Positions 6,434 through 54,200 of a stretch of DNA of 64,000 bases are shown one piece after another. The position numbers were made by a program, and so were the translations under genes. The notes beneath the pieces were generated by a model. The model was not told where the DNA came from, did no database searches, and saw only the letters and a program-made list of their open reading frames with translations. Source of the DNA: Blastocystis sp. Blastoise (Eukaryota; Protista; Bigyra: Opalinata); assembly GCA_039096225.1 (NCBI GenBank), contig JBBPEB010000014.1, positions 558,001 to 622,000 on the forward strand, given 5' to 3'. How positions within the stretch are numbered: position 1 is the stretch's first letter; each line of letters begins with the position of its first letter.

Positions 6434-6443
6434 GAATGAAATA

Positions 6444-6597
6444 AAGTACCTGTACCAGAGTGACCTCCTGTACCAAAGTGACCCGTTTTTGTTTTGTTTC
6501 CATATTTACGGGAAAAAATATTTTTTCACTGTATTTAATAAAGATAAACATGTAAATAACATTTTTTCAATAAAAATAGTCTTTTTTCTGTTTAAAA
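6444..6597. repeat. Left TIR of the pogo-like element
   Basis: Reverse complement of 25751-25904 (mismatch at 6581); contains two direct copies of CCTGTACCA(G/A)AGTGACC at 6449-6465 and 6467-6483. Confidence 0.95.
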
Positions 6598-6711
6598 CAA
6601 AACAAGAAATTTTTTTTGACATAAATTAATAACAATTATAAAAAAATAAGTATATATATGATATATTATATAAAAAAAAAATAAAAAATATATATATAGA
6701 AAGGAATATCT

Positions 6712-8116
6712 TTATTCATTAACTATTATTTCATCTTCTGAAACAGTATTATCAAGTTTATCACTAAATTCATCCTCCATCATTTCTCTATTGATATTAG
6801 TTAAGATTTTATTTGACACTTTAGATGATTTTCTAGTTACTTTACTACGGGGACGATCATCAAAATCCTTGATAAACTCATTCTCATCATCAATAAGAAG
6901 TCTCGAAGCTTGCCATGCACTTAAAATATTTCTTCTTGTAAAAGCTTCACTAAAAGCATCCTCAGATGCTGCTAATAACGAATATCTATTTGTTGTTTTA
7001 TAATATCTTCTAAATTTTGATTTATATACATTGTATATAACTAAATCAAGCGGTTGAAAGACACTAGTAGTATTTTTTGGAAGTACAATTACATCAATAC
7101 GGTTATTCTCACATAAACTAAGAAAATCAGTATCATTACGTGTTGTATGAGCATCAAGAATAAGTAGACAATAATCATTAGTACTATCAAGATTCATATC
7201 TTTTCTCTTTTTATTAACATATGGAAGAAAAACATCTTGAATCCATGAGTATAACACATGTGCATTTATCCATCCAGACTTAGCAGACCATACTTTTATA
7301 TAGGACAGATTTTGCTTATCTATTTCTTTAATATTATAAGTATCTCGATCAACAACATAAGAGGAAGGAACTGCAGTACCATCAGCACAAATACAACCAA
7401 TTAGTGTTGTATGAGTAACACTATTACCTTGTTTTGTTATTGGTAAATGATCATTATCAACTGCAACAGTAACTCTTGATCTTTTATCACCAGGAGTAAC
7501 CCATGACTCATCCATGTTGAATATAAGAGAAGTTTCGATTTTTCTTTTATTTATTACATAATGAATATTCCTATACAGTATCTTTGCATCTTTCTTTGTT
7601 GGTCTAGCTTTTTCTTCATAATTTGTTAGTGGTCTTTTCAATAGAATATTATTCTTTTTAAGCAGCTTCCTTACATACCCTTCTGATACAGTAATCATAC
7701 AGCCAATACCGTTTCGACACCTTTCAATTGATCTCTTACGTATTTCTTCAGCTATTTCATTCTTCGAAGGACAGTTATTCACATTAATTTGTGACTTAAT
7801 CCATTCTATTATTTCTACTTCTTCATTTTCATTAAGAACATGTTGATTACAACGATTATTAAGTGATACATCTTCATTCAGTTTCTTTTCAGAACGTTTT
7901 ATTGTAGACGGAGACACTTTAGTGATAGCACTAATACTAGATAAGGATAATTTCTTCATACCATTCTTTCCATTAAACACTTTTCTTATAGCACAGGACT
8001 TCTTTCTAGGACTTCTTTCTTTCTCAACTTCAGGATGATTCAGAACTTGATTTAGGGTTAAATTAGAATCAAGAATATCAAGATCAGGAAGGGGAATACT
8101 AGTAGTATTATCATTT
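6712..8116 (-). pseudogene. pogo/DDE_1-type transposase, main body, separated from its start codon by the nested insertion
   Basis: HTH-like N-terminal region; catalytic motifs FNMDESW, LILDAHTTR and FQPLD with 35 residues between the last two aspartates (DD35D). The frame stays open upstream of the ORF-track start (7980) as far as the insertion junction. Confidence 0.92.
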
Positions 8117-8123
8117 GGAAAAA

Positions 8124-8198
8124 TGTTAGAAATACCCAGATTTCCCTATTGATTTGTATACATACCCAATTTTTTGTATGATTTGGTAGAAATACCCA
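8124..8198 (+). repeat. Left subterminal array: 3 copies of TG(T/G)TAGAAATACCCA-like motif, 30-bp period
   Basis: ATACCCA cores at 8132, 8162 and 8192. Confidence 0.9.
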
Positions 8199-9420
8199 AA
8201 AGTATCTGTTAACATTTTGATTTCATTGTCCAATCGTATTAATTTATATAATAACCGTGTTTATTAGATGTATTTATAGAATTTAAATTAATAAAAAATT
8301 AAAAGAATAATTCATATTATGACGTTAGGATTTGACAATTTGATCCAATCAATCGATTTTTAAGTTTCTATTAGAAGTTCGTTTATTGTACTATATAATT
8401 CTAAGAATTTGCTTTTTGGCAATTTTATCTATTTTTATTTATTTATATTCATTCCTTATTTTAATCAATATATACATTTATTTTGTTAAATAACTTTTAT
8501 TTATACTATTAATTCAATAGAATAACAATATAGACAAGGATCATAACATAATTGTCTGTAATTGTTTTAAAAATTAAGATTAGCAGACGTATAAGCCATG
8601 AACAGCTATGAAATAAACCTGATTAAAAAAGATAACATAGAATTACGTTATATAACATACTTTTAATTTACTGACAAATTAATTTACTCAATGAATACTT
8701 TATATAAGATCTATGTATTTATAGTATATGAGTTTATAAATATTATAAAGATGTTTTTAGAAAATAGAACTTATTTTTTGATAATTAACAGATTTGTTGA
8801 TTCTTTATATTTTCATATATACTATTACAATGTCATAGTTACATTGTTTAAAGACAAACATATAAATATTAATCTCAAATAACTGTTTTAAGAGTATGAA
8901 CTGTGAATTGATTAAGAAAAGTATTTAATAGATGACGAGATTCAAGTTAACAAGTTTTGTTTGGTATATGATATTAGTTTCTCGATACTATATCAAAAGG
9001 ACAGATAGTTTTATAATGGATCAAGTAAATGTCGAAATGGAAAATGTTGTTTAAAAATCATGAATGTGTATGTGTTGTGTTTGGTTGCTTATGTTGAGCA
9101 TACTGACCAGAATTCAGTTTAAAATAATAAACTACAGTTGTTAAAGTATTAATGATTGCTAAATAGACTCTGTATTTGAGTATATTTTGAAAATAAAAAA
9201 TGAATCTAAGTTTTAAAACTGCATTTAACTCAATTCTAACATATTTTGAATAAGATACACTGTTGAGAATAAAACAGATTACAACTCATCTCAGAAACTA
9301 TGAAGTTTTGAAGGATGAAGAGCTATAAATAATTTAATAAATGCATTCATAAGTGTAAAAAGAACATATAATTAAAATGTTTATTAAATAAAATATCAAT
9401 ATATATATATATATAAGGAA

Positions 9421-9489
9421 TGACTTATGTCAGGAGTTGAACCTGATTGCTATCTAGTTATGATAGCCTCTCACCTTATAGAGCATAAG
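9421..9489 (-). ncRNA. tRNA-like cloverleaf 1 (non-canonical; expression unknown)
   Basis: Minus strand folds as CTTATG / CTCT-ataaggtg-AGAG / GCTATC-ataacta-GATAGC / aa / TCAGG-ttcaact-CCTGA / CATAAG-tca; T-arm matches box B (GGTTCRANTCC). Confidence 0.7.
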
Positions 9490-9531
9490 AGTAATAATAA
9501 TAATGATAATAATATTAAAATACATAATATC

Positions 9532-9567
<36 letters not shown>

Positions 9568-9749
9568 TTATAAATAAATAAAAAAAAATTAAAATATATA
9601 TAAAAAAAAACATAAATAAGTAGTATATAAATTAATGAAATAATTAGTATAAATAAGAAATAAAAATGGGAAAATCTTTTTATTAATAAAAATAAATATT
9701 ATATTAATAAGTATAACAGATAGAAATAATTAAAATATGAAGAGAAGTA

Positions 9750-11990
9750 TGTATATATATATATATATATATATAGATATAAAAGATAATGAAAAATAAG
9801 AATTGAATATAGAAAAAAATTGAAGACAAGAATAAGGAGAATAAGGGAAAATAAATAAAGAAGAAGAAAAATATTAATTAAATGAGAAGAAGAAGGAATT
9901 GATTAGAAGGATAAAGAGCGAAAAGAATTTATATGTATAAAGAAGAATTAGAGGAAGAGGAAGTACATATAGATAATAAGATAAGAAGATAAAAAAAAAA
10001 AGAAAGATGGAGACTAGAAAGTCAAGTATAAGAGATAAAGAAGAAAGAATGTAGAGAAGAGTTAGAAGAACTATAAAGGAAAATCTATTAGAAAAGAAAT
10101 AAAAATATGAGGAGAATACACATAAGAAGAACAAGTGAAGATGTAGGAAAAGCAAATAAGACTATAATGTATATGGAAAAGATAATGAAAGTGAAAAACA
10201 TTAAAAATAAATGATATTCTGTATAATAAATATTGAAAATAATGAGATATAGAAAAATAGATGAAATGGAATGAAATGAGAATAATATAAAGAGGAAAGA
10301 ATTATAAGATATAAAAAGAAGATGCTGAAGAAGAAGGAAAGGAATGATATACAGAAGATATAGAAAGATAAGAAGCGAAAGATATAGAAAAAGTGGAAAA
10401 ATGATATGTAGAATAAGAAGAAGAAGAAGAAGGAGATAGAGAAGCGAAAGAAGGAGATGAAGGATAAATAGAAGAAGAAGAAGAAGGAGGAGGAGGAAGA
10501 GAAGGAGGAAATGAATAGAAGGAGGATAAGAAGAAGAAGAAGAAGAAGAAAGATTAATAGAATAAGGAGAGAAAGATGAATAGAAGAAGAAAGATGAATA
10601 GAAGAAGAAGAAAGATAATTAGAAGAAGAAGAAAGATAAATTAAAGAAGAAGAAAGATAAATAGAAGAAGAAGGAGGAGAAGAAGAAGGAGGAGAAAGAT
10701 GAATAGAAGAAGGAGAAGGAGAAGGATGAAATGAAGAAAAGGAGGAGAAGAAAGATGAATAGAAAAAAGAAGTAGAATGAGATAGAGAGAGAAAGAGACA
10801 GAGAAGAAGAAGGATATATGAAGAGAAGACAACTGAAAAGGAGAATAAGTAAAAGAAAGAAAAGAAGAATATATCGAAGAAGAAGAAGAAGAAAGAGAAG
10901 AATAAAGAATAACAAAAACAAGTAGAAGAAGAAGAAGAAAATAAAGAAGAATAAGGAGAATAATAATATAAAGACGAAGAAGAAAGATTAATGAAGATAT
11001 AAAAAAAGAAGGAGAAATACAAAAAAAGAAGAAGTACCACAGAAGAATATGTTGGAAAATAATGATAAATAGAAGATATACAAGATATAGAAGAAGAAGA
11101 AGATGCCGATAATATTGAAGAAAGAAATATAGACGAGGATAAAGAAGAATAAAGAGAATATGAATATATAGAAGAAAAAAAGTGAATAAGAATATATAGA
11201 AGAAGAATGATAAATAGAAGATATAGATGAAGAATAAAGAGATAAAGGAGGTACTGAAGATATAGGAGGAGAATAATATGGAGAAAATGTAGAATAAGAA
11301 TAATGATAAATAGAAGAGGAAATGTAGATGAAGGAGATAGAAAGAAAAAATATATACAGAGAAGAATGTATAGAAAGAGAAGAAGAAGAGAAGAAGAAAA
11401 ATAAGATTAAATAGAAGAAGAAGAAACAGAAAGAGATAGAGAGAAGGTGATTCAGAATTAAAATAAATAGAAGAAGGATAAATAGATGAAGAAGAACGAA
11501 AAAGGAATGAACAAGGAGACAAAAAATAAGGATATATAGAAGAAGAAGGAAAATAGAAACAATGTGTAGATGAATAATTAAAATGAATAAGAAATAAAGA
11601 AAGTATAATTGGAAGAAGAGGAGAAAAAGAAGTAATAATATAAGAAGGAAATGGAGAAGAAGAATAGGAAAAGGAAGAGTTGAAGGAAATGAAAAAGAAG
11701 AAGATCATGATAAAGAGAAGGAAATGAAGAGAGTAGGTAATGATAGGAGAAGAAGAACCAGTAATAATTAATGGAGGAAAGAAGAAAGTGAAGGAAAAAC
11801 TAGAATATAGAATAGAAGAACATGAAATAAAACATACTATAAAGTTATATTGAGAAAAACAATAACTGTTTTATGTAACATAAGAGTATAAGAATATAAA
11901 ATGAGTAGAAACTAGAAGAGTAGATGAATGGAAGAGAGAAGAGGAGAACAAGGCCAATTCAGGACAAGAGGAGAAAATAAGAATGAAGAA
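9750..11990 (+). repeat. GAA/AGA-rich low-complexity purine tract
   Basis: Degenerate (GAA)n and AGAT runs, with frequent stops in all plus frames. Confidence 0.85.
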
Positions 11991-12013
11991 AAACAAATAT
12001 ATATAGAAATATG

Positions 12014-12081
<68 letters not shown>

Positions 12082-13771
12082 AATAAAAAAGAGAAAAATA
12101 AAAATAAAATGAAATAATTTAAACTATAAGTCAATAAATATATAGAAGAAAGTAAATAATAAGTATATATAAAAATAATATTCAATAATTAAGAAATTTA
12201 TATAATATAACCAAAATATAAGAAGTTAATAATATATATATACTATACAAAAAAGAAACCAAGCAGTTATTGACCAGAAAAGCAAGAACTATATTTAAAA
12301 ACATTATAATAATAGATATGAACGTATATATAATAATATAATTATAATTATAAAGAAAATAAATAGAGAAAATATATACATCTACAATCTGAGTATAAAT
12401 CAAGCAAATCTATAACAACGATGACATTTGAGTTATGAAAGTTGTTTATTAAGCCAAGATATTTGTGCTACTTTGTGACTTAAGACCAATTTGTTGAGAC
12501 AATTAACAATTTTATTTTCTGGAAGCTTTAAAACCGATACAATTAACACAATCAATCCATTGTGACTCACTGAGAAAGCCTAAAGAAATAGTTTTGTATG
12601 GTGACGTCAGATCATCCCATTTAAACCACGACACAATAGCTTACCATCTAGCTCAACCACTTTACACCACTCAGACAAGCTCACCATAGAGAAAGAGAAC
12701 ATAGCACAACAGATCAATCTGCCAATGGAGACTGGAAGGTACTCTACTATACTCCTAGGGCCTATATATAGATAAATATATACTTAAAACATACAAAAAC
12801 GAAATTAATCATATTTTTTATATGATTATTGAAACTTCACTATAAATTAACTTATTAAATTTTATTGAAATCTTAATATTTCTACTTTTTATTATTTATT
12901 ATTTAATTTAAATACTTTAAACCGTTATTCTTACTCATGATGTCTTCTTGTTGTTGATGGAGTATGTATTTATGTAAATAAAATTAGTTAATTGATTAAT
13001 TATTTATAGAGTGTTACATAAAATGAAATTAATGGTTATGGTCATGAGGAAATCACTAGACTTGATGAAGACAACAAAAATTAGTCGATTATGTGATAGT
13101 CACTAGATTGCCTAAATGTGTAGAACTGTCAGAAAAGGTGAGTTTGTGTGTGTTTGAATTTAAATTCAACATTAGTTTGAATACGTATTTCACTAATTAA
13201 TTCAATTTTAGAGAAGTTACAAACACAATTGGTTTTTCTAGTTGATATATTGAGTTAGAATGTCGTTATTTTAATTTTCTATTAGTAATTTGAATTTAAT
13301 TATGACCTATATAAACTAAAGTTAATTATAATAGTTTTCTAGGTAATGTAGATTTGTCAAGGTTCTTTAAAAGTCTCAAGAGTGGTTTATAAATGTTACA
13401 AATGACTTTTAGTGTCAATCATGTTAATATAAACAGTAGAAATGCTTTTTAAGAGTATAGACAAAGAATGCATTGCGTGTTTATAGACTTCAAGGTGTTA
13501 TTGATGAATATTTATTTTTTATTTGTGTGTAGAATTGATCAATAGGATATATAGCAAATCAAAATAATGAATATGGTATTCTAAGTGAATGTAATTGTGA
13601 ATGTGTTGTGTGTTGAATATAGTAAACTAAAAACATTATAAAAAAGCGACTAGTAATGTATAGAGTTTATTTAATTACATGAAACTCAATATACCCTTTC
13701 ATACTGGTTCTAATGAATGAGAATATCTATAGAGAAAAATATTTATATTTTTTTATAAAAAATATAATATA

Positions 13772-13842
13772 TGACCCTAGATCAGGAATTGAACCTGATA
13801 ACAATCTATTAATGATTGCTACTAACCATATTCAGTCTAAGG
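13772..13842 (-). ncRNA. tRNA-like cloverleaf 2 (non-canonical; expression unknown)
   Basis: Minus strand folds as CCTTAGA / CTGA-atatgg-TTAG / TAGCAATC-attaata-GATTGTTA / TCAGG-ttcaatt-CCTGA / TCTAGGG-tca; T-arm 16/17 identical to cloverleaf 1. Confidence 0.7.
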
Positions 13843-13915
13843 AATATTAATTATTTGAATATAACCATGTATATATGTTTAACAGACAAAAACCCAAAAT
13901 ATAATTATATAATTA

Positions 13916-13947
<32 letters not shown>

Positions 13948-14054
13948 AATACTCCATTATACCTATTAATAATAATTTATATAATAAAAACCTTATAATA
14001 AAAGATAACTATTAATATGTGATAAGTATAATGTATCAGAGATATAAAAAGAGA

Positions 14055-14085
<31 letters not shown>

Positions 14086-14497
14086 TTAAAGCCATATATA
14101 CATAGGAGACAAGCTAAGGATATGTTCTATAAATAGTTAGAGAATAAAGAAAATGAATAATAATATATAAATAAATTTGGTTAAAATATTAATAAAATAT
14201 TACATAATAAGTTATAAAAAACTAATAATAGTATAAATATGTATATACCAAAAAGGTTGTATCATCATTAATTATAGTAGTTTCTATTAGGAGCTTGGAT
14301 TCTAAAATATATATAATAGCATATAGATGAATGACATATTTATAGAAAGAAATATAGATATATATTATAAAAGAAGTAATAAGCAGAGTAGAAAGTTATG
14401 TATTTATATTTACAGTATAAAAAAAAAAAAATAACAAAAAGAAAAAAACATATATAAATATAATATAAGAACATAATACTTATAAGAATAAAAACAA

Positions 14498-14536
<39 letters not shown>

Positions 14537-15531
14537 TTACCTGGACAATATCTTAATTTCATTAGCAATATATATATAATAATAATAGAAAATAGTAAAT
14601 ACATATATATATATATATAAAGTTGGAAAACATATAGTAAATTATTAGATATATTTATATATAAGAGAAGTAGACTTAATATATATTACGAAAAATAAAT
14701 TGCTCACATCAATAATGTTATATATATATATATATATATATATACATAATAACTATATGTATATAATCTTTATTTCAAAATAAATACAAAACGATATATA
14801 AATAAACGACAATTAATATACATATATACCACAATACATATACTAACATAATTGAATAAAACATACATAAAGAAGCGCTATGACTATTACTATATGTACG
14901 TATAATAAATTATAAGGTATATGGTATTTAAAAAAGATAATAAATAATAAAGTTGTAGAAAGATAAATGATATAAAAGAGTTAAATAGAAGAATAATTGA
15001 TATAAAATATTAAATACACAAAATATTATCTTTTATATTAAATAAAAAATACATAATATATATATATATAGAATAAGATGATATATATAATAATATATAC
15101 ATATTCAGAATTAAAGAACTATATTTATATAAATTCATAAGAAACATAAAAGGATGACTTACATATAACTATTTAACTATACATAATATATTATAATATG
15201 TATACTTACAGAATACTATATATAAGTATATATATTTATATATATATACTTTGAATATTAATATCAATGATATCTATATATATATATGTATATAAATGGA
15301 TATAAAATAATTACATATATATATATATTAAATATAATAAACATGTAAAAATTAATGCATAAAATATATATATAATGAATACAAATTAATTCTATAATAT
15401 CATATATAAATATATATATTTGTTCACTAAAGCAACGTTTGAATATGAAATAAAACAACTATATATACATATGTAAGCAAATAGACATATTATGGTAATA
15501 ATATAATAAAAATAAATAATACATAATAATA

Positions 15532-15579
<48 letters not shown>

Positions 15580-16509
15580 CTTATAAAACTAAATAAAACT
15601 AAATAAATAAACACATATAATGTGATAGTTATTAAATATATTTATACATATAGAATGAATATATAATAAATATTAATAATAATAATAATAATAATAACAT
15701 GAATAAGAAATAAAAAGTATAAATAATCTAAATAATGATAATTAGTAAAACGTATCTATTTGTATAAACTACATACTTTATAGATTAAAAATGAAAGAAG
15801 AATGAAGTATATAACTCAAAATGGAATATAATATATAATATAATATATAATATAATATATATATATACTAAAAAATAATCTTGAATATAACAATAACTAT
15901 TCACTATATAAAAAATGACATATAGCTAATAATAGAAATATAATATATATATAATCATTGTTTAAAAATAAAATAAAAGATAATAAACAACATAATACTA
16001 ATAAGAGATAAAGAATAATAGAAAAGTAATATAACATATATATTTACATAAAAAGAATATGTATTATGTAGTAATATCGATTATAGAAAGCAAACCATTC
16101 AATGGTAGTAATAATTCTATATATATATATAAGTTTAAGAATAAAAAACAATAGATTATAAAAAGAAAAAGAAAATGTATAACATAATATTATATTATAT
16201 ACAAAATATTCTAGACAAATTATTAAAATATAAATTAATAAATAGGAATATATATTTATATATACATTATGTGATTGCTAATAAGATAATACTTAAATAT
16301 TATAATAAATAATGTAATCTATATACATATATTATTAATATAAATATATATATATATACATATATAAACAAGAATATATGTAGATATATATACTATATGT
16401 ATATAATGAGTTGATTATCCAAGTGATCATTAATACGTCTATATATGATAATATATAATAAATAATATTATATATATATAATGAATAAAAGGAATAAAAA
16501 TGATAAATA

Positions 16510-16545
<36 letters not shown>

Positions 16546-16589
16546 ATCAACTATTGATGATGATGTTTAAGTTCTAATAAATATATATA

Positions 16590-17460
16590 CTTTTAACTGA
16601 ATATATGTAAAATAATCTTGACATAATCATTGTTTTGTTTCTGTTATACCTATAGAAGATATGATAATTATTATATATATATATATACCTTCAATAATCC
16701 AATGATACTATGAATTTGAAAGATAATAAAACTTCAAACAACTGATCATTCACCATTTCTATATAATAATATGAGGTATGTTGATAATAATAAAAATATA
16801 TACTTGTAAGATCATGGGAGAAGTCATTAAAATAATAAAAAGACCTAGGTAACATTCTTCTCAGTAAATGCAATTCATTTAATTTTTTCTTTCAAATTCT
16901 TCACTATATAATAATTAAATATAGAAACAAAATATAAAACAATATACTACTAGAGCATACTAAAACCAAAATTGCCAATCAAGAAATTATGACAAATATA
17001 GTTTCTTCCAATATTGAACAGCCAACGTCATCATGCTCTCTAAATCATGTTTCCAAACCTATATATATAATACTAATTCAAATAAACATATACCTGAAAG
17101 AATGAATCACCAATTGGCTTATTATTTGGATTTATTTCATTCCTAATCTATAATAATCTACCTAATAAAATATAATATAAATATAAATAATAAAATAACC
17201 TTCTAAATAATTAAATAATCCATATACTAATATTTAAAAAATATACTCTTTCAGCAGTTCATTTAAGCTGATGCTGAATAAGACTTTCACGGATTGAAGT
17301 AATTCTGAAAAACTTTAAGAATAGGGACCATATCAAAGAAGACTTTTTATCCCATACTTTGAATCTCTAGAAATTATTTTTAAAACTTGTTCACTGAATC
17401 ACAAAACAGTTTTTATCAAAGAGGTTGCTTCCGCTATTTAGGCTGTTTTAACCCTGTTTC
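16590..17460 (-). pseudogene. Decayed multi-exon gene relic inside the 17.4-kb insertion
   Basis: Series of host-style minus-strand introns (~16650-16688, 16759-16803, 16904-16947, 17059-17093) separating GC-richer blocks. One exon is open (IRNEINPNNKPIGDSFFQ); its neighbours contain stops. Confidence 0.5.
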
Positions 17461-18139
17461 CATCCTCAGAATGATTATTTCTTGAGATTCAAATACTGCT
17501 TTATTTCATATATTGTCATTATAAACATATAAAATGAATCTACGTATGTTTTCTAGTCATAAATATATATATTATATAGTTTACTCTCTTCAAATATTTT
17601 GTTTTATATAGTAATCAGTTGATCAATTGGTTGCGTATTGTTTAGATATTCAGAAAAAGCTATATCTAGTTTCAAATCAACTCTAAAGGTCTTGGTGAAC
17701 AATACTGATGAATCTAAGGTATATAATTATTTTACATTTTCTCATTTTGTTTATTCTTTGCTATATTTATTTCATGTCTATGCTATTAGTATGTTTTTAT
17801 CATTCACATAACATATTTATTTTGTTTTCATTAGTATTATTATTTTTATAATTGAATTAGCTCCTACTTTTCTATCTAGTTGTTTCTTTAATATATATAT
17901 ACTTTTATCTATTTAATTTATTCTACGTATTTATTTCTTTAGTAAAACCAATCAAACTGAAGCACAACCTGGGAATCAGATTGCAATGATTCAAGTCTTT
18001 ATTAAGGTATATATGTATTTAATAATATATTTAGTTTGTTTTAACTGACTATTAATAATATATATGTTATTTTTTGTCTTTATAATATTATTATTATTCT
18101 ATTTTTATAATATTATATATTCTTTAGATTTATTGGTAT

Positions 18140-20830
18140 TAATTCTTCATTCTTCATTCTTAATTCTTCATTCTTCATTCTTCATTCTTCATTCTTCATT
18201 CTTAATTCTTAATCTTAATTCTTCATTCTTTATTGTTAATTCTTCATTCTTAATTCTACTGTACATCTTACTCTAATTTTTCTTTTTTTACGTATAGATA
18301 TAAACTTTTCTTTTCTTTACTATTACGTCTTCACAAATTCTACTATTACTTCTTCGTCCTTCTCATTATACTTCTTATCCCTATCCTTTTCATTATTCTT
18401 CATTCTTCTTATCCTTTCATGATTCTTCTTTTTCTTCTTACTTTACTTCTTCTTATGCTTCTTTCACCTTTACATCTTATTTTACTTTTCATTATTCTTC
18501 TTCTCTACTATACTTCCTTTCCACTTCTCCTTCTCATTATAGATTTACTTCTTGTTCTCATTATTATTGTTTTTTCTTCTTTTATTATCCTTCTACATCT
18601 TCTTATTCTTATTTTTTCTTTTCTTCTTCTTCTTTTCTTTTTTCCCTCGTTATCATTTCCATTCCATTTTGTTCCTTTTTTTCCTTATTCTCCTTGCAAT
18701 TCTTCTCCTTTAGCTTCTTCCTTTTTTCCTTCTTTCCTTCATTCTTCTATTTCTACTTGTACTTCTACTCATATTTCTTCTACTACTACTTACTCTTTTA
18801 TTTTTTCTTCTATTTCTACAGCTACACTACTACTAATAATACTTCTTATTATTCTACTTATATTTCTGCTTATATATCTACTTGTAGTTCTGCTTTTACT
18901 CCAACTCCTACTCGTGCTTTTGCTTCTACTACTTTATTCTTCTCATTCTTCTTATACTTATACTTCTCCTTGCTATTATCTTTCTCTTTCTCTTTCATCT
19001 TCTTCTTTTTTTCTATATTCAATTTCTCATTCTTCTTCTTCTTTTTCACTTTTTCTTATTCTTCTTCTCATTCTTCTTCTCATTTTTCTTCTTCTAATGA
19101 TTCTCATTTTCTTATTCCTAATACTTATATTTATACTTCTGTTTCTACTACTATACTTTTATTTATTTATTTCTCTCCTTCTACGTCTACTTTTTTGTCT
19201 TCATCTCTATCTCCTTTTCTATATTCTCCTTCTATTTATACTTTTACTTTTCTTTATCCTTCCTCTTGTCCTTCTTCTCTTTCTTATCCTTCTTGTTCTT
19301 CTTGTTCTTCTTGTTCTTGCTCTTCTTCTTCTTGGCATTCCTTCCTCTTCTTCTTGTCCTTCTTCTTCTTCTTCTTCTTCTTCTTGTCTTTCTTCTTGTC
19401 CTTCTTCTTATCCTTCTTCTTATCCTTCTTCTTATCCTTCTTCTTGTCCTTCTCCTTCGTCTGTTTCTTTTCTTTCTCTTTCTTCTCTTTCTTCTCTTTA
19501 TTCTCTTTCTTCTCCTTATCCTCTTTGTCCTTCTTATCCTTCTTCTTATAATTTTTCTTCTTCTCCTCTTTTTTTCCTTCTTGTCCTTCTCTTTCTCTTT
19601 CCTCTTTTACCCCTACTTTTCTTTTTCCTTCTTATCCTTCTTCCTATAATTGTTCTTCTTCTCCTCCTCCTCTTTGTCCTTCTTATCCTTCTTATCCTTC
19701 TTATCCTTCTTATCCTTCTTATCTTTCCTATTATCCTTCTTATTTATACTTTGCTCCTCTCCTTCTCCATCTTTTTATTCTCTTCTTGCTACACATTTTA
19801 TTCTCATGTTTCTTCTTGCTCCATATATTCTTCTCTGTCTTCTTCTTCTTCTTCTTCTTCTTCTTCTTCTTCTCATTCTTCTTATCATTTTCTTTCTTTT
19901 TCTGCTTCTTCTTCGCTTTATAATTTCACTTTTCCTTATTCTTCTCTTTCTTTTTCCTTCATTTTTTCTCGTTCTTCTCTTTCCTCTCCTCATTCTCTTT
20001 GTCATTCTTATCTTCTTATCCTTCTCCTTCTTCTTCTCTTTCTTCTCTTTCTCTTTCCTATTCTCCTTCTTATTCATATGTTGCTCCTCTCCTTCTATTC
20101 TCTTTTGAGTCTCTTCTTTTTCCACTTTTATTCTCATATTTCTTCTTCTATACCCACATATTATCCCTTCTCCGTCTTCTTTTTCTTATATTATCCTTAT
20201 CCTTGTACTTCTACTTCTAATCATTCTCATTCTACTTATCCCTACCTTCTACTGATGTTTTTCTTTTTATGCTTATTCTTGGTTTATTCTTATTTTCTTC
20301 TCTTTCTTCTTTTTCTTATTCTTCTCGTCCTTATCTTTCTCTTTCTTGTTCTTATCCTTCTATTTCTCCTTCTCCTTGTTCTTCTTCTTCTCCTTGTTCT
20401 TCTCCTGTCTTTCTTCTTCTTGTCCTTGTCCTTGTCCTTGTCCTTATCCTTTTTATTCTTATTCTTGCCATTTTCATTGTCCTTGTCCTTCTTCTTGTCC
20501 TTTTCCTTCTTCTTGTCTTTCTTTTTGTCCTTGTCCTTGTCATTCTTCTTCTTCTTGTCCTTGTCCTTGTCCTTGTCCTTCTCCCTCATCTTATTCTTAT
20601 TCTTCTTGTCCTTCTTGTCCTTCTTGTCCTTCTCCTTCTCCCTCATCTTATTCTTGTCCTTGTCCTTGTCCTTGTCCTTGTTCTTCTATATCTCCTTGTC
20701 CTTCTACTTCTACTTTTTCTCTTTCTCATTTTACTTCTGCTGCTACTTTTTTATCAACTTCTATTATCATTCTTCATCTACGTATATTACTACCACTTCT
20801 TATTATAAATTTCCTATTCCTATTATTCTA
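18140..20830 (-). repeat. TTC/CTT-rich low-complexity tract (GAA-rich on the minus strand) with (CTTGTC)n sub-repeats
   Basis: Minus strand reads as interrupted K/D/E/R-rich peptides (DKDKDK); plus-strand L/F/S ORFs are stop-free by composition. Confidence 0.85.
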
Positions 20831-22352
20831 AGAATCGTTTTTTTCATTCAATTGAAGTTAAATTCTCATTTTTTAAAACGCTATACACAATATTTGATAT
20901 ATTGAATTATATATATATTGATATATAAAACAATAAATAGAATTGTGTATATATGTTACTTTTATTAGTATGAAGAATAACATATATAGAAAAACATATA
21001 TTATATATATATTGAACATATATATATACTTAATCGGATATATTAGAATTCTATAATATAGATATAAATAAGCATATGTATAGAATGCTATATATATATA
21101 TATATATATATATAGAATTGTATATGTATGTAGAATAGATATACATATGTATTGAATAGTATACATGTATACATATATATATAAATTTATATATATTAAA
21201 TATTGTGTAGAAAATAGAAATTCTAATATATTAATATATTTATGTAGAATCATGTAATATATATATATATTCTTGATTAAAAATATTAATAGTTCATATG
21301 ATATGTCTAATTTGTTTTCTTTTATTCTTTCTTTTAGCACTATATATTGTTTAGTATTATCTTTTAAATCATTTAATTTATTTTTAACACTTTTTTAATA
21401 ACTTATAATCTATTTTTTGCTTTTTGTTTCATTTGATATATAATATATACAAACGATTGCATTTCTATAAATATGTTATTATAAGAGTATAATTTATTAT
21501 TTAAGTTTGCTCAGAAGAGTCGTGACAACAATATCTTTTGACTACCCATCCAGAAACATCATCACCTTGGGAATGGAACATAAACGTGTAATTTGAAATG
21601 TAACATCTGTAAACAAGTCTTCTTTTTTATGTTTTTTTGTTTTTTTATTCGATACCCTAGCTTTTACATTTATAGTAAAACTACATTCTCTAGTTGAAAC
21701 TTTTTACATACATAATTTTGACTCCATATGTTTTTACAGTCTCAAATTTTGTTATTTATTCACTATCTTTAAACTTATGATAGTTCACCTTAATCAAACA
21801 AAAACATATTTCCACTTCTTGTTGTGGCTGAACTGAATCAGTTACCAAATTATAAAACAAAAATAATTAACATGAATTTAATATTGATTTACAGATATCT
21901 TTGTTGTTAAATATGCAGTAATTAAAGCTTTAATCGTCTAAATATGTCAAAATTAAAATAAAGTATATTTTTGAGATTCTGGACAACAAATTTCATTTTT
22001 ATAGTGATTAATAAATGAAAAATCATGAAAAATTACATTGTAGTTTTTAAAAGCTTTATTCGAGAGCAATACAATATATTATTACACTATAAATAACCCT
22101 AATCAGTCGATATAAGTGTCTGAAGTATTTATACTATCCTTAATCCAAAAATTTGAGATAATTATATTTAATTTGTAAATAAAAATGCTTATCTTAAATT
22201 AAATAACTACTTTTCTAAATTATTATAATAATCTATTAAAATATTTCTTATGTTTTAATTACTACAAAATTTTTATGTAAGCTTTAATAAAGAAAATATA
22301 AATATATTCTTGAGTATATTTTTTCTAATAATGACAAAAGAAATAAAAAGAA

Positions 22353-22389
22353 CAAGCGTTTCACGACTGGCTACGCCAGCCTACGCTTG
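22353..22389. other. Isolated GC-rich nested hairpin
   Basis: Outer stem CAAGCGT/ACGCTTG encloses CTGGC-TAC-GCCAG, in a very AT-rich context. Confidence 0.6.
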
Positions 22390-22499
22390 AATCTAAATAA
22401 AAAAAAAAATAGTTTGTAAAAAAATGTCTTTTCATTATTTTAAATTATTAATTCAAATTTAATAATATCATTAATGACTATTTCATTAAATAAAACTAA

Positions 22500-23300
22500 A
22501 AATTAAAATATAAAACAAAAATTAAACTACATTCAAAAATAAATATATTTAAATACTTTGGAAACTTTTATTATTGTACATAATATATAGTTTATAAAAC
22601 AAATAAGTTATTTTTAAAAAACTCTAAAAGACTTTAACGTTTTTAAATCACATATCCACTTTTATTTTAACTAATTTAAATATTCATATACACATATATT
22701 TAATTTGCTATTTTAATTTGTAAAGAATAACTTGAATCTCTTTTATTTAAAGTCACAATTACAAAAAAATGAGTTCTTTTGAAAGATAAAAAACATTCTT
22801 TAAACAATAATATTCTTTTATTTAGTGGAGAATAAACGTATTATACGGTTTTAGAAACAATTAAAATCTTTTTACCCATTTTAACATTCATATCAAACAA
22901 TCAACCACATTTAATTAAACTAATTTTTAATATTTTATATTCTATAATAAGTCTATTTATTATTTTAATAAAAAGTGACCTGAATCTCTTGACTTAACTA
23001 TTGTAATTCTAAAGAATCAATTTTTTTGAACAACTTAAAATGTTTATTTATTGTAGATTTTAATATAAAACACTTAAAAAACACTCTATACATACTTATT
23101 ACAACCATTTTCAAAAAATAGACTCATTTTAACATTTTGGTCAAACACATAACCACCTTTATTTCAAACAATTCTTTTATTATTATAAACATTACACACT
23201 CTAATACTCATTTTTATAAAAAGTGACTTGAATCTCTTCACTTAAGACAGTCAAACAGACAATTCAAAACTATTTTACCCTTTAACTTCATTATAAAGTG
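22500..23300. repeat. Diverged tandem repeat, 248-bp period, about 3 copies
   Basis: TGAATCTCTT anchors at 22733, 22981 and 23229; CATTTTAACATT...CAAACA...AACCAC blocks at ~22877 and ~23125. Confidence 0.75.
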
Positions 23301-23499
23301 ATAATATTTACAGAATTGCCCTAATATATGATTTAGGCCACATTTAACTACTTTTTACAAAATTATGAGTCAACATGTGCATATATTTACACACTCGTCA
23401 TACTTATTTTTGACTATTTTTTTGAGAAATGCAATACATATAAGGTCTAGTTATCAAATATGTAAAAATTAATTGTCAAATATGAATTTGATTTGTCAA

Positions 23500-25000
23500 C
23501 TTTCAGAAAATTTTTAGAAAAACGATTTTTCAATTTTCAGTTTTTTAACATGTTATACTATTGACTCTACTGAACTCATTTTTTTATTAATTTTAAATAT
23601 TAAAAATAATATTATTAATATGTGTTATTCTCTATATTTATTTGTTAAAATTATAATAAATAATAAAATATTGACTGAGAAATTAAAACGATAAGCTATA
23701 CCCTTTTTTCAAAAAAAATAATTTTTATGTTTTGCATATATAATTTTTTATCTCAAAAGTTATTTTATATTTTGATAATATTTTTATAAATTTATAAACT
23801 ATAGTTTGTCTAGTTTATAAATAAGTTTTATTTATTTTTTAAAAATTAATATTGATGGAGGAATTGTCAAAATAAACTATAGTATCAAAAATGTTTTCTT
23901 TTTTTAAACGATTTATTTCACTAATTAAAGACAATTAAAAACATATTTATTTATTTAAAGCATATTTATGACATTTACAACTCATAATGACTCATAACTG
24001 ACTTTTTAAAACAAACATTGTCTGTATCAGTTCAACATGTTGTCCTAACTTTTTCAAATAAGTCACATTCAATGTCCATAAATGATTTTAAACACAAATT
24101 AAAACGTTTTAAGAGTTTATTGAGTTAACATTGTCTGGTGATCTGTTGTCACAGTCTTTTAAAAACCATAAAAAATTATAAAATATGTTTATTTTGGTAT
24201 GTTGTTATTAAATATGAAGTCAAATATCAAATATATTTATAAATGATGAAATTATTGACAACAAACAAATGAAAAATTTTTGAGATAAATTTCAAAAGTC
24301 ATTTTTTTATTGAGTTCAACTCTTGTCTCCTGTGACTTCATTTTTTAATATTTTAAAAAAGTGACAAAAACGGATGACATTTAAGTTTTGTAATATCTAA
24401 ATAAGCTTTAACTTTTTTATTTTATAAAATATTGACTGAGATCTAGTGATCACAAAATATACCCTTTTTAGAAATTTTTCATTTTTATGTTTTTGATATA
24501 AATTAATATATCTCAGTCAATATTAAATATTAAACAAAAATATAAAAAATGGATGACATTTAAGTTGTCCAGTTTACAAATATGTTTTTACTTTTATTAT
24601 ATGTTGAATATTGACAGAGATCTTGTGATCACAAAATTGGGTGTCAAAGATGAAAAATTTTTAAAGCAAATATTTCTCTTTTAATAGATATTACAAAAAT
24701 ATAAAACATGTTTATGACGGATATAGAGTTAGATAAATACATTAAAGCTCAAATAAGTTTATAAAGAAGGAATGTGTTGGATATCAGTTTGTCTTTTGTC
24801 GTTATTTAAAGGAATTATTGTTGTTTCAGAGTAGTTGAGGTCATTGTCATGACAATCGAAACCATTTTAGAGTTTATGGTTAGTGATGTGTGTATTGATA
24901 TGTTGTCAAGTTGTAAATATAAACAAATCTACCCGTCAAAACTATTTATAAGACCAACCCGTCAATAAAAGTTAATTTTATAAAAATAAATATAGAGTAT
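23500..25000. repeat. Diverged ~760-bp duplication with ~180-bp sub-repeats
   Basis: AAAATATTGACTGAGA at 23665/24426; TATACCCTTTTT at 23697/24458; GGATGACATTTAAGTT at 24372/24551. Confidence 0.7.
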
Positions 25001-25381
25001 GTGAAGTGATATAGGAAAAAATATAAAACAATAAAAAATGAAAAACGAAAAATAAGTGTTTTTATAAAAATGAAGAATATTGGATAAAATAAAAATAATC
25101 CAATAATTTTGGTTAAAATTTTGTGCGAAAATGGTTTTTTGCGTTTTTTAGCCAGAAATTTAGAGTTTTTGAAAAATTTCTTTAACAGTCATTTTCAGAA
25201 TTGTGTTCCGGTTTTTATGATGTTATTTTTATTTTATAAAAGTTAATAACAAAGTCAATAATAGTTAAAGTGTGTGAGACACCGTACTTTTGGGCTGCTA
25301 AATTAAGGATATTAATTTTAATTGGTTTATAAGAATTTGTGTTTTCAAACCACCAATCGTTTAGAGTCTAAAATAAACAGT

Positions 25382-25515
25382 TGGGTATTTCTACCAATTT
25401 TGTAAAAATTTTGGGTATTTTAACAAAAATTTTGAAAGATTTTGGGTATTTCTAACAATTCGATTTTTTTTTGGGTAGGTTAAAATAATTATGGTTTTTT
25501 TGGGTATTTCTAACA
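25382..25515 (-). repeat. Right subterminal array: 5 copies of TGGGTATTTCTAACA-like motif, ~30-bp period
   Basis: TGGGTA cores at 25382, 25412, 25443, 25472 and 25501; inverse of the left array. Confidence 0.9.
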
Positions 25516-25522
25516 ATGCCTC

Positions 25523-25554
25523 TTATCATTTTCGGATATATTTTCTATATTCAT
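25523..25554 (-). pseudogene. Detached 5' end (start codon) of the pogo-like transposase
   Basis: ATG at 25554-25552 gives MNIENISENDN, which joins in frame through one TSD copy to TTSIPLPDLD at 8107. Confidence 0.88.
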
Positions 25555-25750
25555 CGTATAATTAATTTATTTAAAAAAAAAACAATAATAAAATAATTAT
25601 GAATAAAATATGAAAACAATTAGATAAAGCCAGTTAGTATTCGTTTTAACTGAATACAAAAAGAATATTCTAGAAAGTTCTAGAATATATTTTCCGTTTT
25701 TTCCTTGTGAAAATTTTAAAAATTATACTATTTCTGTTCTTAAAAACCTT

Positions 25751-25904
25751 TTTTAAACAGAAAAAAAACTATTTTTATTGAAAAAATGTTATTTACATGT
25801 TTATCTTTATTAAATACAGTGAAAAAATATTTTTTCCCGTAAATATGGAAACAAAACAAAAACGGGTCACTTTGGTACAGGAGGTCACTCTGGTACAGGT
25901 ACTT
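25751..25904. repeat. Right TIR of the pogo-like element
   Basis: Reverse complement of 6444-6597. Confidence 0.95.
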
Positions 25905-27173
25905 TAATATAAAAAGCACTAGAGAATATTTTCTATTTGTTTTTTTTTATGTACCAAATATGGTTTAGTTTTTAATTATTATAAAATATTCTTTGAGACA
26001 CTCATAAGTTATGTTATCTATTATAAATAGTATTGATAACAAATAGTGTCATTTTGTCGTTGAAGTTATAATTACCATAATACTCTTGGCTATAGATATA
26101 TTTGAATGCAGAGAAAATGCATTTGAAATACTACAAAGCTTCTATTTGTTATTTATCATGCTTTTTCTCAAATTATTGAATTTGAAAAGTTGATAGATTT
26201 TATAGATTTATATTTAAATATATAAACAATCTTATATTAAACATATTTTATTATTTTAAGAACTGAAAAAATGAAGATATTTGATAATTAACGTCGTCAT
26301 CTTCATTTTTATTTTATATTTTTAAAATCCACATGTTTCAATTTGATTCACAATAAATATTTTTTCATGAATAGAACAAATAATGTTTAATCCTTATATT
26401 TAAAAAGGAATAGCGAATTATAATCAAATAACATCAATATGTAGTATTTACTCACAAAATACAAATAAAACCATAGTATAAACCTGAATTCAATAAATTG
26501 CATAACAAATAAAGGAGAAAAGTATAGTAAATCAACCCAATATATAAAAATGATAAACATAAACAAGTATATTTATGAAACTTCTTCTTAAGAATCCTTA
26601 TATGGCAATAGCATCACTAAAGAAATGAATAACGTAGACACCAACACCAAATAAGCCTACATTTAACAGGGAGCTTAATTACAAAGAATGAAGGAAATCA
26701 TAATTTCATAGAGAAAACAATAAAAAAACGCGAATTAATAATAAAATAATTATGAAAAATCAGAAAATAAGTATAATCTATGATAGAATGAGAAAAAGGA
26801 TATATGTTGGAAACGAAGAGATTCAGAAGCACCACTCTTCATCCACATCCAGTTGAAAAATGAGCCAATGTAGCTCATTCTAGAATATTTAGAAAACGAT
26901 GTGTGATTAAAAATACGGTTTAGGTTTAGCAACAGCTTCAGGTTGTTGACTATTGAGGAATTGCACTAAAAGACTAGAAAATAAACACAGTATATCATAC
27001 TAGTAAATGATTAGAGAATAGGCAATAAAAGAGTAAAATGGAAAAAACGGAAAAACTACCTGTAGAGAAAACTATATTTGTGATTATATCTGTCTTTCTT
27101 TGTTTTCTTTGAATAAATCAATTAGTTATATATATCCATTAAATAGTGAGTTTAAAAGATACACAATTAGAAG

Positions 27174-29587: not shown

Positions 29588-34511
<4,924 letters not shown>

Positions 34512-41419: not shown

Positions 41420-42097
41420 CACTGGTAGGCATTTTCATGGGTCTGAAAAAGCGATACACTAGAAATTCTTGCTAACTATTTTTTAAGAAATTTTCAGTCA
41501 ATAATATGGAATCTATCAAGAATTTATTAAAAACTTAATTGGCTTATTACTATATATTGGCAAATTAAAATACATAGAATAGTCCAATTAAATTAATGAG
41601 AATATTCGGGAATTTTTAATTAAGATCTTTGAAAGATACGTTTGCTTTTATTATCAAAAATTGAGAGTTTTTTTTATTCGTAGTTACTTTTTAGTATTAA
41701 AACAAAACACACTATATTTTTAATAAAATAATAAAAACAGTAAAAAATAAAAATATAATTTATATTTTTCTAAACCTATTGCATTGTGATTTAATAAAGT
41801 ATATTGCAGTCAAATAAAAGTACCTATAAATAGTGAATCTGTTAAGATAATTGTTTATCTATTGAAATATATATAATGAAATAATATATTATTAAAGAAA
41901 CTAATATATACCATAGTAATTGATGTTTGCTAATTCGTGATCTATAAAAAGGAATATGATAAATTAAAATAAAATTGAATTTAAAAAAATACATAAAATA
42001 AGCTATAATTATTGTTTTTAGATTTATGATCTATATAATATATGTAATTAATAAAATAAACAATAATATTATATATAATTATATAATAAATTACTTT

Positions 42098-42194
42098 CAC
42101 TATTAGGCACTTTTGGCCTTTCAGAACATATGATTGGCAAAATCAACTATTTTATCCAATCAATTTCCTTAAAACATCAAAATGCCTAATAGTG
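42098..42194. mobile_element. 97-bp CACTA MITE nested in the large element
   Basis: TIR CACTATTAGGCA at 42098-42109 and 42183-42194; TTT on both flanks. Confidence 0.85.
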
Positions 42195-42285
42195 TTTTAC
42201 AAATTTACTCTATTTCATTACTATGCTATAAATGATAAGTTAATACATAAAATTCATATTATATACCTATTTAAGTGATTAAAAT

Positions 42286-43400
42286 TCATCTTTCAACTTT
42301 TATATCATAGTGATGACCCTGAATGCAATCCATTCTAACTTTGTTAAATTATTCTATAAATATAAGGATACACATAAATAATTATTATAATTCATATACT
42401 TATTTTCAAGATAATATAATACATATTCATAAAATAAATTAAAATACTAAAATTAAAAAAATATATGAAAAGATAGAATCTATCATATTCCAAATAAATA
42501 AAAAGAAACAATAGTTTAATAAAAAAAGTGAAACAATAATAAATAAAACAACCAATAGTATATACTTACCTATGACGACGATTGTGTTCCACAACTGCGT
42601 CATAACTCTTTTGTAGTTCTTCAATAATAGCGTAGTTGGCTTTATATGAATACGTCGTTTTGTCAAAAAAGGAAGGATTTTGCTTCCATTCTAAACTCTA
42701 TATATGTATATATAGATTAGTATATAATATTATAACAAGTTACCATAAAGTCATTTTTCAAACGTTTTTTATCAATAATAGAATACCCTTCTTCATCTAT
42801 AACATTAAAACCAAAAGACGCGGCAAGATTTCCATTATTCTTTTTGTCATACAATGATTTTTTTACACATTTTATTATAACATAATCATCTAATGGTTCA
42901 GCAAACTTGTTTTGGGTCATATACTCTTTTATCACTTGAAGAATAGTAATATACAATTTGTTGTTTTCATCAATTAAACATTTATTATTCGTCTGTTTAT
43001 ATATATGCTTAGCTTCAGCTAACTCATTCTCTTTCACAACAAAAGGAATAAACCTTAAACAAGTCTATATTATAGAATGTATAATTTTATATAAATACTT
43101 TTATTATTCTTGTCGAGTTCTTAATAGCTGGAACCTTTATGTTTCTTATCAGAGCTTCACGTCGAAAAAAAGTTTCCATATTATATGTTAAATAACGACA
43201 TTTTTTATTATCTAAATATATAATAGAAATAGATATAGTTATACTTGTTTTCTCAGGTAATAGTATTAGACGATAGAACTCATGAAAAGCTTCAAATAGT
43301 ACCAATTTGAGTTTTTTCATTCTCTTTATATCTTCATTTATTATTTTATCTCTAGAACTCGATATACACAAGAAAGAAACATGTATTATACTTGGGTGAC
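42286..43400 (-). CDS. Element-borne multi-exon hypothetical ORF (possible TnpA-like accessory gene); ends uncertain
   Basis: Open exons joined by host-style introns, e.g. ...KRLKNDFM|SLEWKQNPSFFDKTTYSYKANY...; divergent from the transposase. No recognisable domain. Confidence 0.55.
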
Positions 43401-44572
43401 ATTTCTGCACTTTTTTATAAAACAAAATAAAAATGGATTTTTCTAGAAAAATATTTTGTATTTATGTAATATTTTAAAAAAGATTTTCAATATTATCTAA
43501 AATAGTCATATTAATAAATAACTATGAAATAAAGTAGCCTATTTTATTCTTACAATAGTGAAGATATACTTCTTTGTATCATCTATTCCATATAATGATA
43601 TATTAAAGTGAATATATTGTTATTCTTGACGAATAAATGAGATAACAAAAGACATTAAAGAAAAATTATAATAATCATAGAAATATAAATTAATGTTTCT
43701 AATTTTACCGATAACATATGAATAATTAATTATTTATAAGTTACACTACCAACTTACAGAAAGAGGTATATTACTCTCGTATAAATAAATAAAAGATAAT
43801 ATGGATTCTAAATATTTTCTTATAATCCATAAAACGTACTCATTAAGAAACCACATATATATTAACTGTAGTCTGATATATATCTAGACTATTTCATATA
43901 AACTATAAACTTTATATATTTAAATACAAACCTTTTTAATAATTTCGTTATACTTATATAATATATTTATATACGTAGCATATTTCACTAGATCATATGA
44001 TGATGACACATATTAAGTAATTAAGAAGCAATTCATTATCAAATCTGTCTATATATATAATTTAATATTTTTATATACATTTTTTATAAATAATATTTCA
44101 ATTAATAATAGAAATAATAATAGTATAAATAGTAAATAATCTTATAAAAAAAATAAGTAGGCCAATAAATGGTGATAATGTAATGTATGATATATATATA
44201 TATATATATACAATATAGAGTAATTTTCAAAAGATATTTAACAGAGACTAAAATGAAAGCATGAGAACAATCTATTTTATTTCTTCCTAAATAAACTGTA
44301 ATAAATAGCTTAATACATAAAGATGTATACAAAATATATATATATACCATTGATCATGTTGTTGAAAGACATAGTATATAATGTTCATTAATATCCCAAT
44401 TCATCAAATATAATTTATATGAGTTAATATTTACTCTACGCTAAATGGAAATCTAGCATGCTTTATAAATACTTCCTTAGTCATTATGTAATAAATGGAA
44501 TTTATTTAAGTACTGTCTCTAAAAAATATATATGAGAATATTGTTAAAATAATATATTTTTTAATAAATACA

Positions 44573-44640
<68 letters not shown>

Positions 44641-53086: not shown

Positions 53087-53147
<61 letters not shown>

Positions 53148-53425: not shown

Positions 53426-53439
53426 AACAATATATGTAT

Positions 53440-54200
<761 letters not shown>

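Follow-up and report, generated by a model that had tools for sequence, protein, structure and literature searches.

Mutator-like elements (MULEs) produce target-site duplications (TSDs) of 8-11 bp and bear terminal inverted repeats (TIRs) of 14-500 bp, some of them having no TIRs at all, and they are present in stramenopiles (PMC6446971). The Tm1 family shows a 9-bp TSD, asymmetric 7-bp tip motifs and TIRs composed of tandem units that are unequal in number at the two ends; its authors noted sub-TIRs in other Mutator-like elements as well and put the family in the Phantom/Foldback group (PMC3169594). Here we describe a 17,406-bp element at positions 8117-25522 of a 64-kb stretch of Blastocystis sp. 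'Blastoise' (Rus-B) DNA (the window; GCA_039096225.1, JBBPEB010000014.1:558001-622000), which carries a perfect copy of the 9-bp TSD TTATCATTT on each side. We consider it, with a probability of roughly 0.7, to be a non-autonomous class II cut-and-paste transposon, the transposase of which would be encoded at another locus and act in trans.

'Blastoise' is the strain Rus-B, whose host is the Russian tortoise, and its genome comprises 33.3 Mb in 33 contigs with a GC content of 23.1% and 8,547 genes (PMC10690189). The genome sample used for comparison consisted of the window and 13 other loci (about 250 kb, reached via exact-protein look-ups), corresponding to about 0.3 Mb or 0.9% of the 33.3 Mb; a look-up of a Tc3-like transposase added no locus to it. 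A set of 1,283 open reading frames (ORFs) of at least 50 aa, taken from this sample (about 1% of the Rus-B genome), was used in tblastn searches.

The bases adjoining the two TSD copies differ, and the TSD is therefore exactly 9 bp long and the element proper occupies 8117-25522. Read inward, the outermost seven nucleotides are GGAAAAA at the left end and GAGGCAT at the right end; they match at only two of seven positions and form no inverted repeat. From the eighth base inward, an exact 15-mer, TGTTAGAAATACCCA, was found at both ends in opposite orientations (8124-8138 on the plus strand and 25501-25515 on the minus strand). More copies of this 15-mer were present at 8184 (plus strand, one mismatch), 25443 (minus strand) and 25382 (minus strand, one mismatch), and it had zero further matches in the rest of the window with up to three mismatches allowed. 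Each end contained an array of phased units of approximately 30 nt built around an ATACCCA-type core; the cores lay 16, 46 and 76 nt from the left tip and 16, 45, 74, 105 and 135 nt from the right tip. Seven of the ten ATACCCA heptamers in the window fell within these two arrays, correctly inverted with respect to each other. Upon alignment of the two ends, we observed an imperfect TIR of about 90 nt with an identity of about 72%, and the similarity ended after about 90-150 nt. A generic scan of the window for an inverted 11-mer combined with an 8-10-bp TSD returned this element as the sole match, and the same scan gave about 0.4 matches per window in Markov-simulated sequence. The original prediction, which was made from the letters of the window, had named a perfect 9-bp duplication and poorly matching 7-bp tips followed by an exact inverted 15-mer; both descriptions were found to be accurate, and its term 'minimal TIRs' understated the extent over which the ends align.

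The element splits a pogo/Tigger transposase gene 10 codons after the ATG. The interrupted pogo element spans 6442-25906, and its 156-bp TIRs are 99.4% identical to each other. On the minus strand, the pogo ORF is broken at the duplicated 9-mer, and its larger part, which comprises 464 open codons, runs from 8106 to 6715. This ORF matched Pfam DDE_1 with an E-value of 2.6e-19, and its best database match was a 475-aa protein of Blastocystis sp. Blastoise (P0001), to which it is 99% identical. This match replaced an initial guess that the DNA came from an anaerobic fungus, to which the low GC content and a xylose-isomerase-like ORF had given rise. Five pogo paralogs on other contigs (L001, L036, L037, L042 and L043) are uninterrupted and contain a single AAATGATAA at the corresponding position. 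Because these paralogs hold the uninterrupted site with one 9-mer, the element is a genuine insertion. All six of the other annotated pogo proteins that keep their N-terminus (seven gene copies) start with MNIENISENDNT, one copy reading MNMEN. The pogo copy in the window differs from those at L036 and L037 at 2 of 1664 aligned bases, and the insertion, being younger than this nearly pristine copy, is very recent. The recent move that had been proposed for the element was thereby borne out. The locus thus documents a very recent move of a large, non-autonomous DNA transposon in a tortoise isolate, for which the empty sites serve as an internal control.

We also noted several features of the pogo copies themselves. 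The annotated protein KAK8805467.1 (P0029, 468 aa) corresponds to the pogo copy of the window, and it is this protein that locates the window on the contig. Its public gene model is chimeric: the first exon, which encodes MLTDTFG at about 8197-8215 on the minus strand, belongs to repeat unit three of the left array and is joined by splicing to the truncated pogo ORF. For annotation purposes, this gene model thus starts inside the element. At L035 10001-10118, a pogo copy (P0028) is truncated at its 5' side and fused to an unrelated GC-rich segment that contributes residues 1-41 of the annotated protein. Additionally, a miniature inverted-repeat transposable element (MITE) of about 668 bp was found at L001 9157-9825, in the 5' non-coding part of the pogo copy. 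This MITE is flanked by a TA duplication, and its TIRs measure about 140 bp and contain repeated GTGGAAAA motifs; a second copy at L043 17110-17802 is 98.6% identical.

Detectable coding capacity is absent from the element. Stop-to-stop ORFs longer than 100 aa were confined, inside it, to two tracts of low complexity and there to the pyrimidine-rich strand, on which they encode strings rich in L, F and S and reach 828-883 aa. The 828-aa ORF at 18419-20902 matched no Pfam family and no entry of the protein database, itself included, and the 828-883-aa ORFs are low-complexity artefacts. A Pfam search with 20 ORF pieces from the non-repetitive interior gave no credible match, tblastn of the 1,283 same-genome ORFs against the interior gave none outside the nested repeats, and the public annotation calls no gene in 8216-18215. 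The ORF, Pfam and tblastn checks revealed no MULE-domain transposase inside the element, and captured host gene fragments of the Pack-MULE type were likewise not detected between the ends by Pfam or by tblastn with the 1,283 ORFs, which argues against a Pack-MULE-type carrier. These results agree with the original prediction in describing a large, transposase-less element with no intact recognisable ORF, the long ORFs being of low complexity and devoid of Pfam or database matches; the 'gene relics' that it had listed were recovered neither by Pfam with the 20 ORF pieces nor by tblastn. The odd tRNA-like folds had suggested an interior derived from an organelle, as in nuclear copies of mitochondrial DNA; this idea was also rejected, since relics of organelle genes were not found among the 20 ORF pieces and the tRNA-like unit belongs to a repeat dispersed in the nuclear genome.

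To place the element, we compared its ends with those of the known systems. The exact 9-bp TSD, with its five empty sites, falls in the Mutator/MULE range of 8-11 bp, in which 9 bp is common, and the inverted repeat, which is about 90 nt long and about 72% identical and has a perfect 15-nt core, falls in the range of 14-500 bp. The three units of about 30 nt facing five, behind the GGAAAAA and GAGGCAT tips, correspond to the composite TIRs of Foldback/Tm1-like elements. The long arms of Foldback elements were not found, as the arrays account for about 230 bp of 17,406 and there is no inverted homology beyond them. The closest published description is that of Tm1 from root-knot nematodes, which has the 9-bp TSD, the 7-nt tips and the unequal tandem-unit TIRs in common with the present element, and many of whose members are non-coding, as this element is (PMC3169594). 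Since the same layout is described for Tm1, the poorly matching 7-bp tips are a known feature. The two are similar but not identical: the Tm1 units measure 13-15 nt rather than about 30 nt, Tm1 elements are about 1-2.6 kb long whereas the present one is 17.4 kb, the host here is a stramenopile, no transposase-bearing member is known for the present element, and there is no sequence similarity.

Non-autonomous MULEs, including the Pack-, sub-TIR and non-TIR types, resemble the element in TSD range, G...C tips and TIR length, and are mobilised in trans as is proposed here; the element differs from them in its lack of captured gene fragments and in its low TIR identity (about 72%). Typical Pack-MULEs are, in addition, much smaller than 17.4 kb. 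Drosophila Foldback (FB) elements have a 9-bp TSD, and these elements and FB-bounded composites resemble the present element in that their ends consist of tandem sub-repeats and in that they carry long non-coding or foreign DNA. In contrast, the FB arms are long and form a large share of the FB element, whereas the arrays here measure 90-140 bp in 17.4 kb. A Mutator/Foldback affinity, which the original prediction had suggested, is the best structural fit, unmatched 7-nt tips having been published for Tm1 and sub-TIR MULEs. The assignment is one of structure, because neither a second copy of the ends nor a partner transposase was found in the sample of about 0.3 Mb. The element is of the familiar cut-and-paste kind and represents neither a new class nor a new transposition mechanism.

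Other superfamilies were considered and rejected. The TSD is 9 bp and not the 8 bp of hAT elements, the bases adjoining it differing on both sides. The termini GGAAAAA.../...ATGCCTC and the 9-bp TSD do not correspond to the CACTA/G termini and 2-4-bp TSD of CACTA/CMC elements. A Tc1/mariner/pogo origin would require TA in place of the 9-bp TSD, and the TA-flanked MITE of this genome looks different. The 9-bp TSD also excludes a Helitron for the 17.4-kb element as a whole; Helitron features were found in the nested element at 22353-25316 and in an element at L047. When public collections of metagenomes, prokaryote genomes and viruses were scanned for two phased core motifs by exact pattern, the matches were all to prokaryotic arrays of the tandem or CRISPR-like type, which are of single orientation, have a GC content of 25-55% and are unrelated.

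The interior contains two opposed purine/pyrimidine tracts, as had been proposed, and an extremely AT-rich core (Table 1); there are no other such purine/pyrimidine tracts in the window. The complementarity of the two tracts is compositional only, with 70-77% over 80-160 nt, and the purine and pyrimidine tracts lie 1.7 and 4.7 kb from their respective element ends. For these reasons, we do not read them as foldback arms, and a giant foldback with kilobase arms made of the tracts is excluded by their asymmetric placement and by the absence of flanking inverted homology.

Near the right end, a complete Helitron-like element, termed X, lies 65 bp from the right repeat array. Its 3'-terminal GC-rich hairpin, at 22353-22390, is the sole GC-rich hairpin in the 17.4-kb element. 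X is 87-88% identical to two 4.0-4.5-kb elements on L045 (3565-7611 and 13902-18357). Both L045 copies are insertions in a CACTA copy and are missing from the otherwise 99.9% identical L044, so the X family has recently been active. All three copies have the 5' end ATTAATATCC and a 3'-terminal GC-rich palindrome ending in ACGCTTG, and all three are located between A and T; two of them have no TSD, and the third site is ambiguous. The family is non-coding and 3-4.5 kb in length. The view of a purely private, old cargo was not supported, as about 3 kb of it is this nested element with relatives elsewhere.

Two tRNA-like modules are also present, which are about 70% identical to each other. A third copy was found at L047 6982-7186, inside a Helitron; both modules are 72-73% identical to it (73% for module 1). 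The two cloverleaves of the original prediction were confirmed as folds, with z-scores of -2.7 for module 1 and -2.4 for module 2, and both modules retain a box-B-like GGTTCAAyTCC. ARAGORN called one of the two cloverleaves. The Rfam tRNA model (RF00005) detected neither module, even at E<=1, and two genuine tRNAs of the Rus-B genome scored 65-67 bits on it; a functional tRNA cargo was rejected on this basis. Sequence comparison identifies the cloverleaves as relics of a dispersed tRNA-like repeat and not as tRNA genes or a special cargo. The idea that the element carries structured RNAs rather than proteins was thus not upheld, as the modules are degenerate copies of a dispersed repeat that recurs in the 3' part of the L047 Helitron. 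That Helitron, at L047 6904-9616, is a canonical 2.7-kb non-autonomous element with a 5'-TC, a GC-rich hairpin, a 3'-CTAG and an A|T target; it carries the tRNA-like module in its 3' region and is missing from the 99.98% identical L044 copy.

In the mechanism that we propose, a transposase would recognise the ATACCCA-core units, which are most plausibly its binding sites; these phased units, each about 30 nt long, number three at the left end and five at the right end. The enzyme would then pair both ends and integrate the element across a 9-bp staggered cut, the repair of which would give rise to the TTATCATTT duplication. The 9-bp TSD, the tips and the unequal tandem sub-terminal repeats suggest a Mutator-superfamily enzyme of the Foldback/Phantom/Tm1 type. 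It is from the structure of the element that we infer its superfamily, its mobilisation in trans and the role of the repeats in binding. The cargo would consist of about 17 kb of non-coding DNA, including the two low-complexity tracts, the AT-rich core, the two tRNA-like relics and the nested 3-kb Helitron-like element. The moved unit would have measured 17.4 kb, or about 14.4 kb if X came later, which is possible because the X family is currently active.

Several points weigh against this reading. The repeat arrays make up less than 2% of the element, unlike those of classic Foldback elements; no second copy of the end motif was found in the remainder of the window or in the 13 other loci; and leftover indel errors in the low-complexity tracts might conceal an ORF. 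Merlin (IS1595-like) elements also give 8-9-bp duplications, and the superfamily call consequently depends on the end layout. TSD length cannot separate Merlin (8-9 bp) from MULEs (8-11 bp), and the element has no identified transposase, so that Merlin, or an undescribed superfamily with an 8-9-bp TSD, might be considered in place of Mutator/Foldback. We regard this as doubtful, as the combination of asymmetric tips, unequal tandem sub-TIRs and a 9-bp TSD is described for the Mutator/Foldback type, and we know of no asymmetric tips or tandem-unit sub-TIRs described for Merlin. A further concern is the assembly, a metagenomic one obtained from a xenic culture with Nanopore R9 reads and Flye and polished with Illumina reads (PMC10690189). 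The pogo repeat, with at least nine copies, could have misled the assembler into a chimeric join that put unrelated DNA within a pogo copy. We consider such a chimera highly improbable: a misjoin would neither yield a precise 9-bp target duplication nor place phased inverted arrays exactly 16 nt from both junctions. Moreover, the GC content is 22-23% all along the window and is alike inside (22.5%) and outside (23.2%) the element, and the interior contains repeats that are also found at other loci of this genome.

The size of the element could also have other origins. A small element may have landed in the pogo copy and grown in place to 17.4 kb through nested insertions and array expansion. 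Nesting is heavy in this genome, where a MITE lies in pogo, Helitron-like elements lie in CACTA and CACTA lies in CACTA, and X, complete, of an active family and close to the right array, may postdate the landing. However, the host pogo shows only two private differences in 1664 nt from its near-identical paralogs, which leaves little time. In the other 14 kb of the interior, there are neither pairs of internal TIRs nor units flanked by TSDs nor Helitron hairpins, homology in the 0.3-Mb sample is limited to the two tRNA-like relics of about 200 nt (72-73%), and the sequence looks old rather than fresh. Growth in place is therefore unlikely. Alternatively, the left end of one small element and the right end of another, located about 14-17 kb apart at a donor locus, may have been used jointly, in which case the cargo would be captured host intergenic DNA rather than an interior specific to the family. 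Composite mobilisation of large segments is established for Foldback and Ac/Ds elements, the end similarity stops after the short distance given above, and the interior resembles anonymous non-coding DNA with resident repeats. Such macrotransposition would be expected to leave the inner ends of the small elements, but the core motif is confined to arrays that face outward, and the five matches to the 15-mer TGTTAGAAATACCCA are all terminal. The genome has about one gene per 3.9 kb, and the intergenic spacers of tortoise isolates have a median of 645-719 bp (PMC10690189), so a gene-free host segment of 14 kb would be unusual; the sampled gene-free stretches of at least 6 kb all lie within or adjoin CACTA-type transposons. 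We hold this second origin to be quite unlikely, and a single non-autonomous transposon mobilised in trans remains the reading that we prefer.

Table 1. Coordinates of the element, its host pogo copy, its interior features and the neighbouring CACTA transposon in the window.
Feature	Position	Strand	Remarks
Host pogo/Tigger, 3' part	6442..8116	-	TIR 6442-6597; DDE_1 transposase ORF 6715-8106
Left TSD copy TTATCATTT	8108..8116	.	Single copy at the homologous site of pogo L001, L036, L037, L042, L043
Left asymmetric 7-nt tip GGAAAAA	8117..8123	+	Outside the inverted repeat
Left sub-terminal array, 3 units of ~30 nt	8124..8210	+	ATACCCA cores at 8132, 8162, 8192
tRNA-like module 1	9422..9643	-	Cloverleaf 9422-9492; ARAGORN Val-AAC
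Homopurine-rich tract, (GAA)n-like, 82% purine	9801..12000	+	Only short ORFs on the purine strand
tRNA-like module 2	13772..14004	-	Cloverleaf 13772-13842; anticodon-loop reading UAA
Extremely AT-rich core (12-18% GC)	14000..16800	.	(TA)n and short tandem arrays
Homopyrimidine-rich tract, 85% pyrimidine	18201..20800	+	Polarity opposite to the purine tract
Nested Helitron-like element X	22353..25316	-	Both termini; between A and T; no TSD
Right sub-terminal array, 5 units of ~30 nt	25382..25515	-	ATACCCA-type cores
Right asymmetric 7-nt tip ATGCCTC	25516..25522	+	Inward reading GAGGCAT
Right TSD copy TTATCATTT	25523..25531	.	
Host pogo, 5' part	25523..25906	-	ATG 25555; MNIENISEND; TIR 25751-25906
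CACTA/EnSpm-type transposon, 13,868 bp	41420..55287		Second copy L041 4510-18377

In a reading that we consider improbable, tortoise-associated Blastocystis would harbour an active and undescribed family of the Mutator/Foldback-like type that moves blocks of at least 14 kb of low-complexity, non-coding DNA, and the present element would be the first of its members to be seen. A RepeatModeler-based survey ascribed the 1.5-2.4-fold genome expansion of the tortoise lineage to 'intergenic' DNA and not to transposable elements (TEs), and 5.6-7.5% of the genomes of tortoise isolates is annotated as TE, a figure given as a bulk fraction only (PMC10690189). If such a family exists, it would, together with the 14-kb CACTA elements described below, explain part of this expansion. 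The locus thus bears on the share of the enlarged non-coding fraction that is transposon-borne.

The CACTA/EnSpm-type transposon of the window has CACTGGTAGGCA termini (CACTG) and a 3-bp TSD, which reads GTC in the window and ATA at L041, and its two copies, located on different contigs, are 99.93% identical. Its TNP2-like ORF at 46437-49121 showed a weak DUF4218 match and belongs to an ORF family of at least nine protein clusters, all from the Blastoise strain. This ORF was rejected as a partner transposase of the 17.4-kb element, because the CACTA element to which it belongs has CACTG ends and a 3-bp TSD of its own. The two transposons of the window are alike in that both are large, contain kilobases of non-coding low-complexity DNA and were recently active; the CACTA element differs in its CACTG termini, its 3-bp TSD and its own TNP2-like ORF, and the two have no end motifs in common. 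A related 14.4-kb CACTA-like element (CACTATTAG...CAGTG) at L044 6571-21018, within a repeat common to L044 and L047, encodes the 972-aa P0036. It is nested in a further CACTA-like element that encodes P0033, which indicates that this genome contains stacks of large DNA transposons, one inside the other. Since CACTA elements of 13.9 and 14.4 kb, with 99.9% identity between copies, occur in the same genome, the size of 17.4 kb, which the original prediction had called giant, is unremarkable here. Taken with the paralogous loci, the window displays pogo, CACTA, Helitron and MITE families that are active or recently active and mutually nested.

Two other regions of the window were observed. At 30248-33562 on the minus strand, there is an open frame of 1,105 codons that is rich in Asn/Ser/Ile repeats and has no Pfam domain; the annotated model probably differs, because a guessed 1038-aa product is not on record. 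At 55405-56705, two adjacent ORFs separated by a short intron-like gap are xylose-isomerase-like, with a weak AP_endonuc_2 TIM-barrel match and an LRFACAWWHTF motif recognised by eye. These ORFs and the pogo transposase are intact under the standard code, which rules out a ciliate genetic code, and about 120 bp separate their start from the right-hand end of the 13.9-kb CACTA element.

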